NCBI RefSeq assembly: GCF_000400465.1 | Contig: NW_008806281.1 | Location: 330,001 to 362,000, forward strand | Length of the DNA stretch: 32,000 bases | DNA from: Wallemia ichthyophaga EXF-994 | Lineage: Eukaryota > Fungi > Basidiomycota | Direction: 5' to 3' | Shown here: one piece after another, positions 4,374 through 15,069 of the stretch | How the letters are laid out: every line of letters begins with the position of its first letter | Position numbering within the stretch: position 1 is the stretch's first letter | The notes under the pieces: model-generated | What the model saw: only the letters and a program-made list of their open reading frames with translations | What the model was told of the DNA's origin: nothing | Databases searched by the model: none | Program-made: the position numbers and the translations under genes

Positions 4374-4702
4374 AAGGCTCAGTCAGGAACAAGGAACAAA
4401 TTGACTGACAAGGTGCCGATAATGGATATAGGTAAGGAAAAGGAGCAAGAAAAGTACGTGGAAAGGTTGGAGAGAGTTGGGAGTGTTGAAGAGGATGATG
4501 ATGATGATGATAAGATTGAGGATGATGAGGATGACTGAATGTGGAGTGTAGTGAGTTATGTGTACAGTACAATAAGTAAAAGCAGTAAAAGTAGAATAGG
4601 ATTATAATTTTAATGTTTATATTGTAATTATCCAATTTTCATTAATTTTATTGGTTTAGCTAGTTCAATCAGTTACAGTCACCATCACTCACCACCATCA
4701 CA

Positions 4703-7700
4703 ATGTCAATTAATAACGACAATAAGTGTGGCAGCAGTGGAAATAGCAGCATCAGTAGCAAAAACATCGAAAACAACAATACCACCAACAATACACTCTC
4801 ACGCTTACAACAAGCTTTCAAGAATCAAGAAGAAGCAATGAGAGCAAATCCGAAATTCAGACTACCACCTGCGCCTGGTGATATTTCCAATAGGAAACCA
4901 TCTGAATTATCCCTAACAGCTCCTAAGTTTGGTCAAATATCTGGACTTTTAAGCAGAGAGGAGGGGAATGACGATTTTGACTTTAATTTTAATCCATTAT
5001 CTGCAGAATTGAATACACCAATCAGTTTGAGTGATATTGCAAACTCAGAGTCGACTAGCTCAACTTTAAATAATCCTTCAACGTCTACTTCATTATCAAC
5101 TCATAATGACGCAGGTGTTACCTCTAATGATGCTCTAATTAACACTGGTGATAGTTCTAGTACCTCCAATCACACCACTATACCACAATCTCATAAATCC
5201 CCCAACAAAGTCGTCTCAGATATTCTAAACGACGACTTACTCGATCGAAAGTTAGCCACAAGAAAACATTACATTCTTCCATCTTCCCCTCTCTCCCCCT
5301 CCACTCCCACTCAAATCGACGAAACTGTCGATCATGACTCAAAGGATGACCCCATCGCTTCTCAAGTTTGGAAATTATACGCTAAACACAAATCTTCTAT
5401 CCCAAACGCTCAAAGAATGGAAAATTTGTCTTGGAGAATGATGATGATGTCTTTAAGAAGAAAGAAACATTCTGAGTCAAATCATTCTCTTAAAGATAAA
5501 ATTGATTCACCCCCCACACAAGATTCAGCTGATTTTGATAATAGAAGCGATCACTCTTCACCAACCCCTGAAGCTCAACCTGCCACTCAAGTAACCACAA
5601 ATACTGTTCAAGAAAATCTTGTAGACGCTATCAACTCTACAAAAATTCCTCTGCCTGATGAAGATGATCAGGAAGATGAGGAAGACGAGCGTGGTAGAAA
5701 ACCTCGCAGACATCGTGCTCCAAGGAAGCAAACAAACGTCGTCGTCGGTTTCGCTGGCAAAGTCCCTGAAGGTCTTGATAATGGTGAAGCTATTGTTGAC
5801 GATTTGATGGATTGGAGGGGCAAATCTAGATCTAGGTCACGCTCCGTTATGGACTGGAGAGGTCAATCAAGGTCCCGTTCTAGGCCTCCTCAAAATCATC
5901 AAAGCACAAACCCTTCAAAGAGTTATTTCATCCCCAGTCTACCTACACACACTCCTTCTCCAGATACGGCTAACAATGCGGATGCCTGTGAATCTACTCC
6001 TGATCATCAAAAGCTCCACCAAAATCTTCCTTCACGTATTAAAAATGAATTGACAACTACAATTGAAGAAGATAGTATTGGAAATGATCACTTTTACCAC
6101 TTTGGCACTGCTTCATCCTTACCAGACCCACAGTTCTTTTTACATCATGCTCAACAAAACAACACTAACCGTGCAAACGATCCTCAACAAAATTTTTACG
6201 ATCTTTTGAGTGATAATAAAGATATAGAAGACCTTTTAAAAGGCAAGCCCGCTCAGCAGTCACAGTATACTCCTTCTCCTAGTTTGTTGTCCAAATCTCT
6301 CTCTTCCAGTTACGAATACAGACCTGAAATTCATAATGTACCAGTGAGTGCGAAAAAAATTCTAAAAGCTCCCATTGACACTAGTTGAGGTGGCTCGTAA
6401 GCGTCCTGCTGAATATTCTCCAAAATTTACCACATTATTCAACAACATAGGAAACGGTCAATCAGATCCACCTCCTTTCAGCCTTACCAGCTCTTTCATG
6501 CCTCACCATAATAAAACTGACAACCATGAATCTGGCGTTAATACTGAAGGATCACTCAGCCCAGATGGAATAGATCTGAATGAGAAGAGCTTGGTCTTAC
6601 CTGATGGATTCCCAGACGATGGTGGTTTATCTGCACTGTTATCTCAGAGTGCCCCTGGCGATTCATACGGTGTATTTCCTCCAACAATACCGCAAGGACT
6701 ACCAACATACCAGGAGTATGCTCCAGCGAATAAGGACAACGAGGACTATCAAAATCAACAATCAGGTGATCAAGATTGGAATAACTTATTCAGCTTGCTG
6801 TATGGTACAAATTCCGCCCCATCCACTCCATCCTTGACGGATTCAATGAATTCGTTCGCAGCAAACATCAACCCAGCTAGTTTATTTAACAAGAAGAACA
6901 GGGAAGTGAAACCGATGCGCACATCCAATTCTAGTCAGTCTTCTAGTAAATATGCCTCTCAATCTCCTCAACTGCCAACTCAACCCACCCCCAAATTGAA
7001 GTCGTCTTTTAACATTCAATCTAAACCACATCCCATTAAATCACAAGAGCAGAACCATAAGAGCAACAACGTCTTATCTACCAGTGTACCATCCATACCA
7101 ATAACGAAGACAGGAACACAATCAGGAGGTCAATCTCAACAGCGTTCATCTTATGTACCATTACGCCAAGCACCGGTTAAGCAACCTAGTAATCCTAATT
7201 CCACTGCATCTCACAGTGACGTCAACTTGATAACAGATATCCAAAGCGCGAATGCTATGACTTGCTACAACTGCAAGACTACGAAAACACCCTTGTGGAG
7301 ACGAGATCCAGATGGCAACTCACTCTGTAATGCCTGCGGGCTTTTCCTAAAGCTGCATGGTGTAGTTCGACCACTAAGTCTCAAATCTGACGTCATAAAG
7401 AAGAGAAACAGAAATGGAGCTGGCTCGAATAATCCAAAAACAGTGGGTAAGAAGGGTGCTAAGGAGGGTACCCAGAGAGAATCACAAGCACCTTCTTCAT
7501 CTGATGTAAACTCTCACGCAAGCACCAATTCAAACCAGGACAATTACGCAGAATCAAGTCCCGCTTTGCTTCCATTCATGGGTCTGCCACCACAACCAGT
7601 CGTCAATACTAAGAAGAGGCGGACTAGCGCTGTTCAACAGCAGCAGTTTGAGCAACTCGAAGAGAAGCAGATTGAGAGTTCTGTTGGATATCTCAGTATC

Positions 7701-7715
7701 GATCGGTCAGTTTAG
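4703..7715 (+). CDS. areA: AreA/Nit2/Gat1-type GATA zinc-finger nitrogen regulator; one short intron near 6344-6389
   Basis: N-terminal DUF1752-like motif [27 protein letters not shown]; RKRPAEYSP motif; zinc finger [50 protein letters not shown]. The two overlapping ORFs need a splice to join. Confidence 0.88.
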
Positions 7716-8289
7716 CGTGCTTTGATGAGGTATGATTACCTGGATCTCTGTTTTGTTTTGGATATCGTAATTCCTTTCGCTATCATTTCGCTATTACTAT
7801 TTTATCACTTTGTAGGTATTGTCTCGAACATTAAGATATGTCTCACTGCTCGTAGGTATTTCCAACTCCCCCTTTCGCCTCTCATTCAAGCTTTCAATAC
7901 TCTGACTGTGTCTTTATCCGCAGTCTCATTACTCATGTTCTGATTTTACTTGCGATTCACGTGTAATTTTATTTTGACGGTTGTTTTAAAGGTTGAGATA
8001 GGTATTTATATAATTGCCCACGATTATCCTATCTGCGACTCTGCCATGCATCACTAATAACCTTCAGAACAAGGATGAGGTTTATAAAGATGTTTGGAAA
8101 TAATGGTTTTTCCCTCTAGCATGTCTGACAATAACAATCACTTAATGTGATTATATTTGCTCAATCCCGTGCAAATCTCTAGGTAATTGCGAAAATGATC
8201 ACAGCAAAAAAAACAAAGACTTTCTTATAGGCCCAATGTATTTTCTAATATCACGGCGAATTATACATGAAATAGAACCGAAATGCACG

Positions 8290-8580
8290 CACTACTCAAA
8301 AAGTCAAAATGCGTGCATTAGGTCAGCGAGAAATAATTACAGTCGCCTGAGGAAAATCCGTTTGAGCTCTTGCGTTCCAAAATTGATCAGATTATTATGC
8401 AATAATCACCATCAAAATCTAATTACTATTCATAAAATGTGCATCAGGTTAGGTTAAAGATAAATTGAGTCGGAAAAGCATTATGGTTGCGCCTCTTAAA
8501 TTATCTAAAATCAGGACACGTCATGTACTGGTTAGAAACGCAATAAACTCACTTCATGAAGTGCTTGCATTAGGTATTAC
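8290..8580 (+). repeat. Three related degenerate units at exact 126-bp spacing outside the identical IR
   Basis: TGCATTAGGTCAG at 8314, TGCATCAGGTTAG at 8440, TGCATTAGGT at 8566. 8290-8326 vs 9322-9357 = 31/37 with one gap. Confidence 0.7.
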
Positions 8581-9040
8581 GTCAAGGTCTACTGAAAACT
8601 TAGCTTAAAAAATACAGAAAATGCCCAGCACATTTCACTCACAGTTTAAATTTATGTTATACTAGTTTCAAGCAAACGTCATAGATATTACCAAGCTTAT
8701 TAACAAAAAGAAGCACGATGGACGACAATCTCTTTGCTTCTAGATTATTTGCAGGCCCCACGTGCCCCCTCACGTCATAATTTCTGTACATAGCCCTTCC
8801 ACCAGTCTAAACTAATGGACAAAATTCAACAGTTCCCATCTACTGTATTTACACGCCTTTCCTCGTCACGGATATAACATTGATCTCATTAAATCAGTTT
8901 GTTGTATATGCTTTTTCCTTGTACAAGCCATTCCTTTAATCTGCAGCCTGCAACTTACAATATTTGCTAAATTCTTCATTGTGTAATGGAAATAAAATAT
9001 CATGATCCTTTATCGATTGAACTGGAAGAAAAAGGAACGT

Positions 9041-11491
9041 AATTAGTAATAGCTAAGGCTGAGAAAGCATAGAGAACGATAAAGGTAAACACTTGAAAAC
9101 AGAAGAAAAACAAGAACCGAAAGCGATATGCGTATTTCATACTCAAATGTCAAGGTACATCATGCACAAGTTAAGAGTCGAAATGCGATCACTTTTCAGA
9201 ATGCATGATTTAGATGAAGGCAAATGTAAAGTGCCGGAAAAAGAGTTCGTAGATGGAACTATTCTCTTACTTAAGCTTCTAAGATAATTTTAAACTAATT
9301 AAAATCATAATACACCCCACTCACTACTCAAAATGCCAAATGCATGCATTATGTTAGGGTACATTGAGGTGCAATTGAAAAGGAACCCAAGAAAGCCAAA
9401 GTTGTGCCATTATTATGCTGAAAATTAGGAAAACATTACGCACTAATTAGAGTCACAATCAACCTACTATTCAAATTCCACAATACGTGCATTAGGTTAG
9501 CTTACCATTTACCTAAACCCTGTGTCCTCAGTGAGCCTTTCAAGTTCGTCAGCTTGTTGTACAGCACAACCCTGCCGATGTCCTTTCAACCAGCATAACG
9601 TCCATACGGAAAATGGGTTGAAAGTTTCGTATTTCCATCTTAATACGCCGCTAAAGTAGCAGCAGGTGACCTGATATCAAATATGTTTCGGCCTGTCGTC
9701 TTCTAAAAAGCCAGAAATCACTTTTTTCCCTAATCAGGATCGTGATTCACCCAATACTTTGCCTACTGACATGCACTAGGTCAGGTAACTTTTAGGGGAA
9801 AATGAAAAGTGACTCCATAATCCATCTCTTTGGTCTTTCAAACTCTAAAAAGTTCACGAATGAATAGGCATCACATCAAATGGCGATCCCTTCCCCCCAA
9901 CCCATCTCACCTAACAGCACGCACAAAGACTGGCTACTTTTAGGGGAAGCTGAAAAGCCGTACAGTATGGTGCTCTTTTGGAACTGTGGTATTTTTAAAT
10001 TCAGTAATCATTACGCAATATTCAGGATGACAATCCCCTACTTTTCATCATGCCAGAACTTGAGCACTAGGATGTCATAAGGGAAGTCATATTTATACTC
10101 AACAATTATTCATTCGTTCCTGACTAGCCCTATATGGTTTATAATGTTTTGTGAGCTGAGCGTTATCGCTTGGCTGAAGCTTGTTCATGATCGAAAGGTG
10201 GTACTGTCAAACTATTAGACAAAGCCGTGATAATATATCGTTAAAGTTTCTGTTCACAAATCAATATGTCTCATCAGTACTTAACACGTCGCTGGTGTAT
10301 GTTAACAACTGAGTTGATGACGGAAGTAGGGAATATGTCTTATCAGAGTTTAATATGTCAGTTAAAGTAATGCGATCGTTACAACCTCATTCCTGTTACT
10401 ATCTCATTACGATTTCAATAGGCTCGAGCCACATAATGACTCAGCCTTTCTTGCGTGAAAAGCTTCCTAATTGTGATTAAAGGGTAACTATAGAATCAAA
10501 AGAAGAGCAGAAATTTTCATCATTAATAGCTGTCTAAGTTTGCAGAATTGTATATTAGACTTTCATTGTTAACTTAAGGTTATTAATCACTTTGGCAGTC
10601 GGAGCCCTACCCTTTCGAATTTGATGAAAATAATCGAGTTTACTGGCTAGCTATACCACTAAACTAGAATTATTGACTATCATTATTCAATTTAAATTGA
10701 TGCCAGATGCGACCTTTTCCTAATTGTGCCTAAGGACACCACCCCTGATGACGTACATGACCCTTTTAACTGGCATTTGGCCCCTAACTATTTGAGAAGT
10801 GCTCATTTGTAAATGTTAATGGTGTCTCAAAAATGCTTTACAACGCCGGATAATCAGAAACCGTAAAGAAGAAGGAGTCACTGTTTAAAATCAAAGAAGA
10901 CAAAGGATTTAAACAATAAGAAAGCTCAGTGATTACTTTTGTTAAGCTAATTAATCAGTTGATGACCAATAGAGAAGTCAGTGGTATTTAGCAAATTCAA
11001 AGAGAAGGTCATAAATCACGAAGCTTTCCTGATAAAATAATCATCGCGAAATAACTTTGTTTCTAATCATTTCACTATGATTTTTCTTTGCATAGTCTTT
11101 TTATATCTTAAGAGCTCTTTAAGCAGCCAATTTCTCAATAATTTATTATATTTTTGTTACAATCATTAAAAATAACGTAACTTTTATTCTTTACAAGGGT
11201 GTTTGACATTAAACGACAGAGATTATCGTAACCAATGTCACTGAAAAGTTTCCTGTGTATCGTGTGTTATAGGAAGTTTTCAAGACATTAACGTCAATGA
11301 TTTTGATAATAGATCAGATTTTACCACTAACCCTTCACATATCAAATATAAATTAATTGTAAAAATTACGCAAAGTATTGCTTCATCTACAAAATTCAAG
11401 GCCATTGTTGACATTATTGTTTAATTACCGTCAAATTGTCACTAAGTCCTACATCGACATTTTACTGGTCGTTTGCATTGCAATCGATTTT
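9041..11491 (+). repeat. Left arm of giant inverted repeat (2451 bp)
   Basis: Block-by-block comparison: position p pairs with 23511-p. Identical to the reverse complement of 12020-14470 except at 10944, 10966, 10973 and 10981. The mirrored ORFs in the track (9093-9287/14224-14418; 9880-10080/13431-13631) give the same coordinate sum. Confidence 0.99.
9200..10100 (+). repeat. Degenerate ~143-148-bp tandem units in the outer left arm (mirrored at ~13410-14310)
   Basis: TGCAYTAKGTYAG at 9345, 9488 and 9772 (spacing 143 and 2x142). 9345-9382 vs 9772-9809 = 28/38 ungapped. 9788-9809 vs 9936-9957 = 20/22, 148 bp apart. Confidence 0.75.
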
Positions 11492-12019
11492 CTGAGCTGA
11501 TTAAGCTTATAAATGCAAAAGAGTAAATAGAATTTCGCGACAGCAGAGTAATCTCGATCCGTCCTGACGAAACCAAGCTTTCGAGAAATCGATGAAAGAT
11601 ATGTTTATATTCTTGCTTCAAATTGTAGAAAACGGACAAGAAAACAGAAGGTCATGGGACACGGATACATACTTTTACAATTTAACGTGGTGAAAACAAT
11701 CTAATATGATACTTTTTTTTTCTTATTTGAGATTGACAGCGAAGCTCATATAGTGTTGATTCAATTTAAACGACAAAGTTCGGTAAAATATTCTTTTCAG
11801 GGCATGCAATTATTTATTTATCATTACCTTAGTACAACAATAACAAGATTGAAAAGTACGACTTCAAATCTTGTACTGAATTTTGCATTGATGAAAAAGT
11901 TCTTCATGATGTAAGTTTGTCGACTCAAATTAAAATCAAAATGTGATGCACTTGTCGTTTATTCGTAGAAATTCTGATTTCTTTTCATTTTATTTATGCA
12001 TAAGCTTTTGTCAGCTTAA
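11492..12019. other. 528-bp AT-rich spacer/central core of the inverted repeat
   Basis: Sequence between the identical arms; spot-checked 60-nt lines are 27-28% GC; no credible ORF. Confidence 0.9.
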
Positions 12020-14470
12020 AAAATCGATTGCAATGCAAACGACCAGTAAAATGTCGATGTAGGACTTAGTGACAATTTGACGGTAATTAAACAATAATGT
12101 CAACAATGGCCTTGAATTTTGTAGATGAAGCAATACTTTGCGTAATTTTTACAATTAATTTATATTTGATATGTGAAGGGTTAGTGGTAAAATCTGATCT
12201 ATTATCAAAATCATTGACGTTAATGTCTTGAAAACTTCCTATAACACACGATACACAGGAAACTTTTCAGTGACATTGGTTACGATAATCTCTGTCGTTT
12301 AATGTCAAACACCCTTGTAAAGAATAAAAGTTACGTTATTTTTAATGATTGTAACAAAAATATAATAAATTATTGAGAAATTGGCTGCTTAAAGAGCTCT
12401 TAAGATATAAAAAGACTATGCAAAGAAAAATCATAGTGAAATGATTAGAAACAAAGTTATTTCGCGATGATTATTTTATCAGGAAAGCTTCGTGATTTAT
12501 GACCTTCTCTTTGAATTTGCTAAATACCATTGACTTCCCTATTGATCATCAACTGATTAATTAGCTAAACAAAAGTAATCACTGAGCTTTCTTATTGTTT
12601 AAATCCTTTGTCTTCTTTGATTTTAAACAGTGACTCCTTCTTCTTTACGGTTTCTGATTATCCGGCGTTGTAAAGCATTTTTGAGACACCATTAACATTT
12701 ACAAATGAGCACTTCTCAAATAGTTAGGGGCCAAATGCCAGTTAAAAGGGTCATGTACGTCATCAGGGGTGGTGTCCTTAGGCACAATTAGGAAAAGGTC
12801 GCATCTGGCATCAATTTAAATTGAATAATGATAGTCAATAATTCTAGTTTAGTGGTATAGCTAGCCAGTAAACTCGATTATTTTCATCAAATTCGAAAGG
12901 GTAGGGCTCCGACTGCCAAAGTGATTAATAACCTTAAGTTAACAATGAAAGTCTAATATACAATTCTGCAAACTTAGACAGCTATTAATGATGAAAATTT
13001 CTGCTCTTCTTTTGATTCTATAGTTACCCTTTAATCACAATTAGGAAGCTTTTCACGCAAGAAAGGCTGAGTCATTATGTGGCTCGAGCCTATTGAAATC
13101 GTAATGAGATAGTAACAGGAATGAGGTTGTAACGATCGCATTACTTTAACTGACATATTAAACTCTGATAAGACATATTCCCTACTTCCGTCATCAACTC
13201 AGTTGTTAACATACACCAGCGACGTGTTAAGTACTGATGAGACATATTGATTTGTGAACAGAAACTTTAACGATATATTATCACGGCTTTGTCTAATAGT
13301 TTGACAGTACCACCTTTCGATCATGAACAAGCTTCAGCCAAGCGATAACGCTCAGCTCACAAAACATTATAAACCATATAGGGCTAGTCAGGAACGAATG
13401 AATAATTGTTGAGTATAAATATGACTTCCCTTATGACATCCTAGTGCTCAAGTTCTGGCATGATGAAAAGTAGGGGATTGTCATCCTGAATATTGCGTAA
13501 TGATTACTGAATTTAAAAATACCACAGTTCCAAAAGAGCACCATACTGTACGGCTTTTCAGCTTCCCCTAAAAGTAGCCAGTCTTTGTGCGTGCTGTTAG
13601 GTGAGATGGGTTGGGGGGAAGGGATCGCCATTTGATGTGATGCCTATTCATTCGTGAACTTTTTAGAGTTTGAAAGACCAAAGAGATGGATTATGGAGTC
13701 ACTTTTCATTTTCCCCTAAAAGTTACCTGACCTAGTGCATGTCAGTAGGCAAAGTATTGGGTGAATCACGATCCTGATTAGGGAAAAAAGTGATTTCTGG
13801 CTTTTTAGAAGACGACAGGCCGAAACATATTTGATATCAGGTCACCTGCTGCTACTTTAGCGGCGTATTAAGATGGAAATACGAAACTTTCAACCCATTT
13901 TCCGTATGGACGTTATGCTGGTTGAAAGGACATCGGCAGGGTTGTGCTGTACAACAAGCTGACGAACTTGAAAGGCTCACTGAGGACACAGGGTTTAGGT
14001 AAATGGTAAGCTAACCTAATGCACGTATTGTGGAATTTGAATAGTAGGTTGATTGTGACTCTAATTAGTGCGTAATGTTTTCCTAATTTTCAGCATAATA
14101 ATGGCACAACTTTGGCTTTCTTGGGTTCCTTTTCAATTGCACCTCAATGTACCCTAACATAATGCATGCATTTGGCATTTTGAGTAGTGAGTGGGGTGTA
14201 TTATGATTTTAATTAGTTTAAAATTATCTTAGAAGCTTAAGTAAGAGAATAGTTCCATCTACGAACTCTTTTTCCGGCACTTTACATTTGCCTTCATCTA
14301 AATCATGCATTCTGAAAAGTGATCGCATTTCGACTCTTAACTTGTGCATGATGTACCTTGACATTTGAGTATGAAATACGCATATCGCTTTCGGTTCTTG
14401 TTTTTCTTCTGTTTTCAAGTGTTTACCTTTATCGTTCTCTATGCTTTCTCAGCCTTAGCTATTACTAATT
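12020..14470 (-). repeat. Right arm of giant inverted repeat (2451 bp)
   Basis: Reverse complement of 9041-11491 with 4 mismatches (12567, 12545, 12538, 12530). Confidence 0.99.
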
Positions 14471-15069
14471 CAATAATATATCTATGACTTTTGCTTGCAA
14501 TTCGTAAAACGTACACACCAACAAAGCGAGCAGTGGTAATAAATAGGGCTACATATTGTTTTCACAAGTACTTGTTTTTCTTGACGTTGATATGTTATCA
14601 AGTCTCCTGAACCGCAAATTGGCGTCTTTGGATCTTCTCGACTAGAATAGCATTTTCAAAGAGAGAAAAGTCTTCTAGTCAGTAAAGTTAAAAAGATGTG
14701 CACTCTTGTATCATTCAGCTGTAAAACTCGAAAGTATGCATAATCAGACCGGTGTATTTACCATGCATAATCCTCGAGTTGAGCCTCAAATTGTTTGTGA
14801 ATGATTGCAGGTTACACTAAATTAATTGACTGTATATTTTTTAAGGTTGTAAGTAATCAACTGCTGCCCACTTTTAACGCTTTGAACCATCAGCTCCTCG
14901 AAGCTCACGTCGGCTTCGATTGAAACTGAACCGCCCTCCTAGAGGATAATGACCACAGCACAGGTATCCCTTCACGTTAAAATATAAATCCAAAGGCGAT
15001 TCAATGACTAGTGTACATGTGCAAATTTGGGAAATGCAATATTGATATGCAAGGCAATCGAAGGTATGC

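Follow-up and report, generated by a model that had tools for sequence, protein, structure and literature searches.

In the 32-kb Wallemia window (the whole stretch of DNA analysed here), the shoulder of an AT-rich core within a gene desert carries the relic of a tandem array, about nine head-to-tail units of 126-148 bp that run in a single orientation from ~8260 to 10090. The explanation that we favour, tentatively and at close to an even chance, is that this is an old local array which arose before a large inverted repeat (IR) and was partly copied by it, and that the boxes conserved in its units probably serve as binding sites under constraint, within a candidate pericentromere. Taken by itself, the repeat is an ordinary small decayed tandem array. 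The observation from which the analysis started, made in an earlier sequence-only reading, is confirmed with amendments, and the interpretation attached to it is partly supported: of the "old satellite array decaying" proposed there, the old and decaying tandem array stands, while a satellite in the usual sense does not, as the copies are nine, local and only 60-70% identical. The repeat may rather mark phased protein-binding sites than a true satellite.

Recounting placed the 13-mer TGCAYTAKGTYAG exactly where it had been reported, at 9345, 9488 and 9772, and ACTAYTCA at 9323 and 9466, and reproduced both the 28/38 identity between 9345-9382 and 9772-9809 and the 20/22 identity between 9788-9809 and 9936-9957. 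The box copies around the three exact 13-mers, on the forward strand like all copies of the array itself, occupy 9285-9372, 9433-9509 and 9720-9809 (leave-one-out E 2e-9, 2.8e-10 and 3.7e-7, respectively), the last of them carrying a ACTTTTAGGGGAAnnTGAAAAG extension and belonging to repeat family D1. The weaker copies claimed alongside them fared unequally. The copy closest to the core (10008-10088, with GCACTAGG at 10064), previously placed at ~10063, is upheld by a leave-one-out E of 2.7e-4 and is 71% identical over 76 nt to 9422-9496. The copy at 9202, the first in the left arm (9156-9229, with TGCATGATTTAG), is weak (leave-one-out E 0.05), and the degenerate unit at 9920 (9861-9957, family D1, E 0.008), in which the box is barely recognisable, was missed by the box profile and has as its sole support the 78% identity of 9918-9957 to 9770-9809, 148 bp upstream. 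Three copies outside the IR, with a 126-bp period, had been overlooked. These are an exact 13-mer at 8314 (8257-8335, with ACTACTCA at 8291; nhmmer E 7e-15, leave-one-out E 3.5e-7), a 13-mer with one mismatch at 8440 (8391-8463, with ACTATTCA at 8425; leave-one-out E 1.9e-6) and, 126 bp past the latter, a weak copy at 8566 (8521-8578, with TGCATTAGGTATT), for which nhmmer gave E values of 0.002-0.2 according to the model and which was excluded from training throughout. All in-arm copies are mirrored in the right arm, as had been stated: the arms are 100% complementary, and the mirror images of the six in-arm units, with mirrored nhmmer matches, lie on the reverse strand at 13423-14355, a left position x corresponding to a right position 23511-x.

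As the motif was defined post hoc and three of the nine copies are weak, a chance resemblance selected by eye has to be weighed; its probability is close to negligible, since the shuffles, the leave-one-out recovery and the genic controls alike contradict it. At one mismatch or fewer, TGCAYTAKGTYAG occurs at five same-strand sites between 8314 and 9772 and at three mirrored ones, which makes 8 in the 32-kb window against 0.29 expected, a count reached in none of 100 shuffles (0/100). The composite ACTAYTCW-N8-20-TGCAYNAKGTYAG has 5 matches against 0.00 expected. Low-stringency self-BLAST returned six matches at E<=0.001, every one within 8260-10071; four equal-sized genic control chunks treated in the same way gave nothing except one short low-complexity palindrome. 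The leave-one-out profile recovered six solid and two weak copies, all of them local, and a box profile search gave no further match in the rest of the window, nor in 172 kb from related loci. TTAGG is enriched as well (8 against 1.4 expected) because it is part of the box motif. A telomere-like reading (TTAGG/TTAGGG) would be speculation, the enrichment coming only from motif content.

The IR consists of a left arm (9041-11500) and a right arm (12011-14470) that are 100% complementary over 2460 nt (pair I1), with a 510-nt loop between them (11501-12010). BLAST aligns 9041-11536 with 14470-11968, so reaching into the ends of the loop, whose first and last ~40 nt pair imperfectly. Although the array had been placed inside the IR arms, it extends 780 bp to the left of the left arm, crossing the boundary at 9041, and a profile search of the right flank (14471-15069) found zero box copies. 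Copies to the left of 9041 and none in the right flank imply that the array predates the IR, and the one-sided crossing implies that the right arm was copied from the left. In this way the array dates the palindrome, because a right arm derived from the left makes the IR a secondary structure, specific to this lineage, that was added to an AT-rich gene desert older than itself. The sequence of events that we favour would begin with an array older than the palindrome, which continues in unbroken register past the outer edge of the left arm (9041). A 2460-bp inverted duplication would then have passively copied the inner six units, and the arms would have stayed identical since then, with gene conversion as the probable means. 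Copying in the inverted duplication would fully account for the mirrored copies and for their facing the core. Within the array, a two-unit block (8286-8456) resembles 9318-9504 (E 1e-7), which points to duplication of whole units; a unit due near 9631 is absent, and units are also missing across 8600-9150.

Long perfect arms with direct repeats near their outer ends are also found in the Drosophila Foldback (FB) element, whose long inverted arms are built of degenerate tandem sub-repeats. By analogy, the 5.4-kb palindrome could be a mobile foldback or long-TIR transposon with arms that carry tandem sub-terminal repeats bound by a transposase, a reading that we consider very unlikely. Unlike FB, the Wallemia IR lacks a target-site duplication (with ...GGAACGT to its left and CAATAATA... 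to its right, the flanks have no direct repeat in common), it lies in a conserved gene desert, and its repeats cross one arm boundary, continuing beyond the left arm and not beyond the right, so that they are not confined to the arms. In addition, Pfam searches with the ten longest ORFs of the gap found nothing transposase-like, and the sister species has a gene desert in the corresponding position but lacks the IR there.

Only a tripartite box of ~65 bp has been kept in each unit, composed of ATTAYGCAMTAATYAGRATC..AAT, then CACTAYTC, then CRTGCAYTAGGTYAG. The 13-mer is matched at >=12/13 positions in five copies, and the boxes are about 60-70% identical among copies. Between them lie spacers of about 70-90 bp whose sequence similarity is at random level (mean pairwise z of 0.5, against 3.9 for the boxes). 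Constraint on the box would explain such uneven decay most simply. Phased protein-binding boxes, which the sequence-only reading had offered as an alternative to a satellite, would be a putative explanation with indirect support from the confinement of conservation to these ~65 bp. Conserved boxes, randomised spacers and kept spacing together form an unusual pattern, of the kind that would be expected from constraint on phased binding sites. In the favoured account, the spacers would have been randomised with their spacing kept while the box stayed under constraint, and each nucleosome-sized interval would hold one putative sequence-specific DNA-binding site.

Alternatively, the array could be a neutral relic, which is a real possibility if one clearly short of an even chance. 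An old tandem duplication would merely be decaying, caught in the palindrome by chance and with its boxes unbound, and preservation of the boxes would result from short-tract gene conversion, from differences in mutation rate or from alignment loss caused by indels. Few copies of low identity on which Tandem Repeats Finder is silent, units that are missing or unrecognisable, nothing conserved in the sister species and no match to a known family would all be expected of such a relic. It accounts less well for the same ~65 bp being conserved in six to eight copies next to random spacers, or for a spacing held within a few bp (143, 143, 284, 148 and 143), which speaks against frequent indels in the spacers. 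Constrained binding sites, the explanation that we prefer, meet difficulties of their own. Only six copies are solid and units are missing, short-tract gene conversion among boxes could equally give uneven decay, spacer alignments scrambled by indels could mimic it, the two sister-species regions scanned (the desert and the stretch downstream of the GATA gene) contain no boxes, and the period differs between the outside (126) and the inside (143-148) of the arm. RIP-like decay was also considered and is unsupported, with transitions and transversions at 22:28.

The alternation of conserved blocks with variable spacers of intron-like length (67-89 bp), together with AG/GT-like and YAG-like strings at box edges, could suggest an array of small RNA genes or the exons of a decayed repetitive gene, with the spacers as intergenic or intronic DNA. 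This is most improbable. No frame is open through all boxes, as each reading frame meets a stop in at least one of them; the positions at which copies differ have no codon periodicity (13/11/10 and 22/24/28); and the candidate 5' splice site GTYAG has an atypical pyrimidine at +3. For six boxes on both strands RNAalifold found no consensus structure (0 and -0.3 kcal/mol). Likewise, ARAGORN found no tRNA gene in the gap, Rfam returned nothing at E<=1 in the gap and nothing at gathering score in the whole window, and Pfam searches with the ten longest ORFs of the gap gave noise only (E>=0.016, all under curated cut-offs).

Autocorrelation across 9200-10100 gave peaks at lags 143 and 148 that exceed shuffled sequence, as the sequence-only reading had anticipated. 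Lag 143 reached z=4.2 against a threshold of 3.7 (k=1), and lag 148 reached z=8.8 against 5.3 (k=4) and z=17.9 against 9.0 (k=6), where the threshold is the 95th percentile of the shuffle maximum across lags 20-399 (family-wise). Tandem Repeats Finder, in contrast, reported no array of period 126-148, even at a minimum score of 30. Unit spacing is 143, 143, 2x142, 148 and 143 within the arm, and 126 and 126 outside it. A significant periodicity, a unit near nucleosome-core size and a position adjoining an AT-rich, gene-free candidate centromere could be taken for a classical centromeric satellite, in which the array would be the eroded edge of a homogenised, all-chromosome family that wraps CENP-A nucleosomes. 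We regard this as very improbable. About nine units at 60-70% identity make neither a long many-copy array nor a block homogenised to an identity visible to Tandem Repeats Finder, and they sit on the shoulder (35-42% GC) rather than in the AT-rich core. The sister desert is without tandem or self-similar repeats, and repeats were reported to make up only 1.67% of the genome, which measures 9.6 Mb and is roughly three-quarters coding (PMC3849046). The earlier link to nucleosomes and to centromeric satellites had drawn on the 143-148 period alone and does not extend to the copies outside the arm; with a period of 126 there, nucleosome length is not a fixed property of the array. In alpha satellite, a nucleosome-scale monomer keeps its CENP-B box while the rest drifts, and the boxes recur at a fixed phase. 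That family, however, runs to thousands of homogenised copies spread over every chromosome and has a known binding protein, unlike the nine local copies in Wallemia, and the likeness is one of possible mechanism and not of membership.

The gene desert itself spans 7.3 kb (7716-15069, as defined from the ORF list and Pfam) and separates a GATA/AreA-type gene on the forward strand from an MFS transporter gene on the reverse strand, whose 3' ends converge on it. It exceeds every other gap in the window, all of them about 1 kb or less. Its AT-rich trough (10900-12700, 27.7-30% GC) covers about 1.8 kb, comprises the inner arm ends and the loop, and holds the GC minimum of the window, which coincides with the IR centre; the box array lies outside this AT-rich core. 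The sister species has a gene-free, AT-cored gap of 6 kb beside the same MFS gene, with a trough of 1.5 kb. Apart from 3' UTR-sized stubs adjoining the GATA and MFS genes the sequence of this gap is unalignable, and it lacks an IR, tandem repeats and any self-similarity. A profile search found the boxes absent from the sister desert and from the GATA-downstream region of the sister, so any function they have would be young or fast-evolving. The desert also lies at a synteny breakpoint, as an inverted block gives the sister another left neighbour (an inversion breakpoint). Its position beside the MFS gene has thus been kept between the species while the sequence diverged, a Malassezia-type pattern.

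That the desert serves as a centromere is plausible and circumstantial, as judged from one 32-kb window. It would be the strongest candidate that the window offers for a small regional centromere, and the boxes would be pericentric landmarks, resembling a CENP-B box or a boundary element, that phase or delimit chromatin beside the core. In a fuller version, which we find doubtful, the desert would be the centromere of this chromosome, with an AT-rich core in a homogenised palindrome, and the boxes would bind a putative pericentric factor as a CENP-B-box analogue that sets nucleosome phase or boundary. The IR would then be a recent novelty, since the sister species shows the AT-rich desert alone. 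If the desert is a centromere, the species pair would capture a shift from a plain AT-rich to an IR-type centromere within one genus, and the boxes would offer a handle on a sequence-specific pericentric protein in a basidiomycete. The literature searched yielded no description of a Wallemia centromere, and this would, if true, be the first Wallemiomycetes centromere described and the first of IR type in Basidiomycota.

Centromeres of other fungi resemble the locus in part. In S. pombe, the cnt core is flanked by imr inverted repeats with otr repeats outside, the outer dg/dh repeats are of kb scale, and tRNA genes act as boundaries. The Wallemia locus likewise has a core, a flanking IR and repeated elements on its shoulders, but the structure is 10-20 times smaller and no tRNA genes were found. 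The abstract on K. phaffii likens the centromeres of that yeast to those of S. pombe (PMC5010909). As the abstracts describe them, K. phaffii and C. tropicalis centromeres have near-identical IR arms of ~2-2.5 kb around a short unique core, lie in the largest non-coding interval of a compact genome of yeast type and are not conserved in sequence between species (PMC5010909, PMC7292649). With its 2460-nt arms and 510-nt loop the Wallemia locus shares the near-identical kb-scale IR and the short core. It differs from these Saccharomycotina in belonging to a basidiomycete (Wallemiomycetes), in having a loop of only 0.5 kb and in having a sister species without an IR; the phased box array on the IR shoulders is a feature of the Wallemia locus that those abstracts leave unmentioned. 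In Malassezia, a 3-5-kb kinetochore region extends across an AT-rich core at the GC minimum, at synteny breaks, without an IR and with an enriched 12-bp AT-rich motif within the core (PMC7025860). Wallemia resembles it as a basidiomycete with a very compact genome, an AT-rich core and a synteny break at the desert, whereas it has an IR, and its conserved GC-neutral box sits away from the AT-rich core.

A search for IR-containing contigs through the ORFs at 9880-10080, 8236-8457 and 4703-6388 found none on record. The contigs of three strains, all from short-read assemblies whose largest k was 120 (PMC6738226), stop at 14352, so that each reaches exactly k-1 = 119 nt into the right arm, and these breaks confirm the edge of the IR. 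As a possible outward extension of the IR, a 21/23 match was noted between ~8665-8688 and the reverse complement of ~14478-14500, with an alignment z of 3.4 and some shuffles scoring higher. One strain carries G in place of T at a site 76 nt into the right arm.

The gene-free interval of the window (7716-15069, 7.3 kb) contains a real tandem array, local and decayed, which predates the inverted repeat (IR) lying there and was partly copied by it. A repeat search places the left IR arm at 9041-11500 and the right arm at 12011-14470, each 2460 nt and 100% complementary to the other, around a loop of 510 nt (11501-12010), and in BLAST imperfect pairing continues ~40 nt into both loop ends. The longest ORF in the interval has at most 73 aa, no Pfam, Rfam or tRNA matches were found within it, and the convergent genes on either side, a GATA/AreA-type gene (+) and an MFS gene (-), face it with their 3' ends. 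Elsewhere in the window, ORFs of 100 aa or more are separated by gaps of ~1 kb at most. The lowest GC content of the window (27.7-30%) forms a trough at ~10900-12700 that spans the loop and the inner arm ends.

In each of the three short-read strains the contig stops at window position 14352, which is 119 nt (k-1) into the right arm, and its terminal 119 nt match the left arm too. Because the contigs break exactly k-1 inside this arm, the palindrome is no assembly artefact; it is genuine and present in strains ~0.02-0.2% diverged from the window. In one strain, position 77 of the contig (L002, reverse complement) shows a T-to-G change corresponding to window ~14428, 76 nt inside the right arm. 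The Rad9 ORF of the window is 100% identical to a protein in GCA_004918625.1, GCA_004917865.1 and GCA_004918895.1 (56% in Wallemia mellicola, the nearest named relative), and these assemblies fit the set of the 21-strain W. ichthyophaga population study, which used IDBA-Hybrid with a maximum k of 120 (PMC6738226).

The sequence-only reading had described a degenerate motif recurring at nucleosome length, and its counts were all correct when recomputed. The 13-mer TGCAYTAKGTYAG matches the window eight times with at most one mismatch, where 0.29 matches would be expected and none of 100 shuffles gives eight; the composite ACTAYTCW-N8-20-13-mer matches five times against 0.00. Autocorrelation of 9200-10100, the test on which that reading had staked the period of 143-148 bp, was compared with a dinucleotide-shuffle background under a maximum-over-lags control, and both lags exceed the thresholds: lag 143 at k=1 (z 4.2, threshold 3.7) and lag 148 at k=4 (z 8.8, threshold 5.3) and k=6 (z 17.9, threshold 9.0). 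The inner arm (10100-11500) gave no peak. Low-stringency self-BLAST returned six hits (E 1e-7 to 1e-3), every one inside 8260-10071, and none on genic chunks of equal size. In the window, a profile of the box, the ~65-bp conserved part of each 126-148-bp unit, matched array copies only, and 172 kb from other loci gave no match. Leave-one-out profiles recover the copies anchored at 8314, 8440, 9345, 9488, 9772 and 10063 (E 3e-10 to 3e-4) and, weakly, the copy at 9202 (E 0.05); the copy at 8566, absent from training, is weakly found by the box profile. Leave-one-out search misses the 9920 unit, which is linked to the 9772 unit solely via a 40-nt ACTTTTAGGGGAA..TGAAAAG stretch.

The array had been placed inside the IR arms, yet it also extends past the left one, where the copies at 8314, 8440 and 8566 stand at distances of 475-730 bp from the arm, with a period of 126 bp. 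Within the left arm, anchor spacings are 143, 143, 284, 148 and 143 bp. Since copies occur beyond the left arm and none in the right flank (14471-15069), the array predates the inverted duplication, and the left arm is apparently the original and the right arm the copy. The boxes are mirrored and point toward the core as described, a trivial result of arm copying. A two-unit block at 8286-8456 matches 9318-9504, which suggests that duplication moved multi-unit blocks in the manner of unequal exchange. The slot for a unit near 9631 (9505-9730) holds unrelated, slightly GC-richer sequence (~41%) with a 45-aa ORF (9522-9659, no Pfam match); this unit was either replaced or decayed completely. An inverted 21/23 match between ~8665-8688 (tttcaagcaaacgtcatagatat) and ~14478-14500 (ttgcaagcaaaagtcatagatat) lies 8 nt beyond the right arm but ~350 nt beyond the left, and may have been left by an earlier IR that reached further out and has since acquired a ~345-bp indel; its local alignment scores z=3.4, which some shuffles exceed.

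Conservation across the unit is very uneven. The alignment resolves a tripartite box, ATTAYGCAMTAATYAGRATC..AAT followed by CACTAYTC and then CRTGCAYTAGGTYAG, with pairwise z against shuffles averaging 3.9 (many >9), whereas the 67-89-bp spacers average 0.5, the pair 9772 and 9920 excepted. Conserved boxes between random spacers, together with the kept spacing, point to constraint on the box. A constrained box would give a sequence-specific protein a single binding site in every ~126-148 bp, and the predicted sites, in DNA of 35-42% GC outside the GC trough, would lie along the shoulder of the putative centromere core. We regard such putative binding-site boxes as possible and prefer them tentatively; a purely neutral relic is somewhat less probable, and the remaining rivals taken together are unlikely.

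A coding array was rejected, as no reading frame stays open through all boxes and the copies differ without codon phase. Structured RNA was rejected for the boxes, and RIP-type decay on transitions to transversions of 22:28. Sub-terminal repeats of a foldback transposon were dismissed because no target-site duplication was found at the IR ends, the repeats span the arm boundary and the desert site is conserved. Nor is this a classical satellite: the copies are too few and too diverged, and Tandem Repeats Finder, proposed earlier as a check, does not report the array. Taken alone, the argument from nucleosome length is weak, as the two sub-arrays differ in period; the typical fungal nucleosome repeat length of ~155-170 bp is above the array period. 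The earlier interpretation holds in part: the old decaying tandem array stands and phased binding boxes stay tentative, while a satellite in the classical sense and the confinement to the arms do not hold. On the + strand of 8250-10100, TTAGG occurs eight times (1.4 expected) and TTAGGG three times (0.3 expected), mostly within the 13-mer and the ACTTTTAGGGGAA extension. The box core resembles two degenerate telomere-type half repeats (TTAGGTYAG), and that this hints at a Myb/telobox-type binder is pure speculation.

In a sister species with 74-87% protein identity (SRR25399871, Logan assembly), the GATA, MFS and Rad9 genes share one 113-kb contig. There, acetyl-CoA carboxylase follows the GATA gene (downstream region L005 11320-13135) and the BRAP2-to-MFS block is inverted, which sets the window's desert at a rearrangement breakpoint. 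Beside MFS lies a 6.0-kb gene-free gap (L010 6536-12503) between convergent genes, zf-HIT and MFS, like the desert, with a 1.5-kb core at 29-32% GC. This gap contains no IR, tandem repeats or self-similarity, and is unalignable to the window except for UTR-sized stubs; the box is absent from it and from the region downstream of the GATA gene. An AT-cored desert of fixed position and changing sequence is the behaviour of small regional centromeres in compact fungal genomes, such as those of Malassezia (PMC7025860), and both deserts likewise keep position while sequence turns over. The K. phaffii centromere is designed as a short core enclosed by an IR of 2 kb (PMC5010909). No description of a Wallemia centromere was found in the literature searched. 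As an object the array is ordinary, of value as a historical marker of palindrome formation; if the desert is a centromere, it may offer a handle on pericentric proteins.

The W. ichthyophaga genome is reported to measure 9.6 Mb, of which roughly three-quarters is coding and 1.67% repeats (PMC3849046). The window is of fungal origin, and its ORFs beside the desert encode Sec7, PH, GATA/AreA, MFS, importin-beta, Rad9, dihydroorotate dehydrogenase, kinase and CTLH domains. The GATA/AreA-type gene (4703-7715) consists of two ORFs in different frames (4703-6388 and 6375-7715, 14-nt overlap), and a protein search returned no annotated protein 100% identical to it. As the sister gene is split likewise (L005 8236-10023 and 10001-11320), a short intron kept in both species is the most likely cause, in preference to a frameshift. 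Coding microsatellites and low-complexity repeats in the left-hand genes (110-190, 877-929, 4466-4534 and 5657-5689) are hexamer, nonamer and GAT runs unrelated to the box array.
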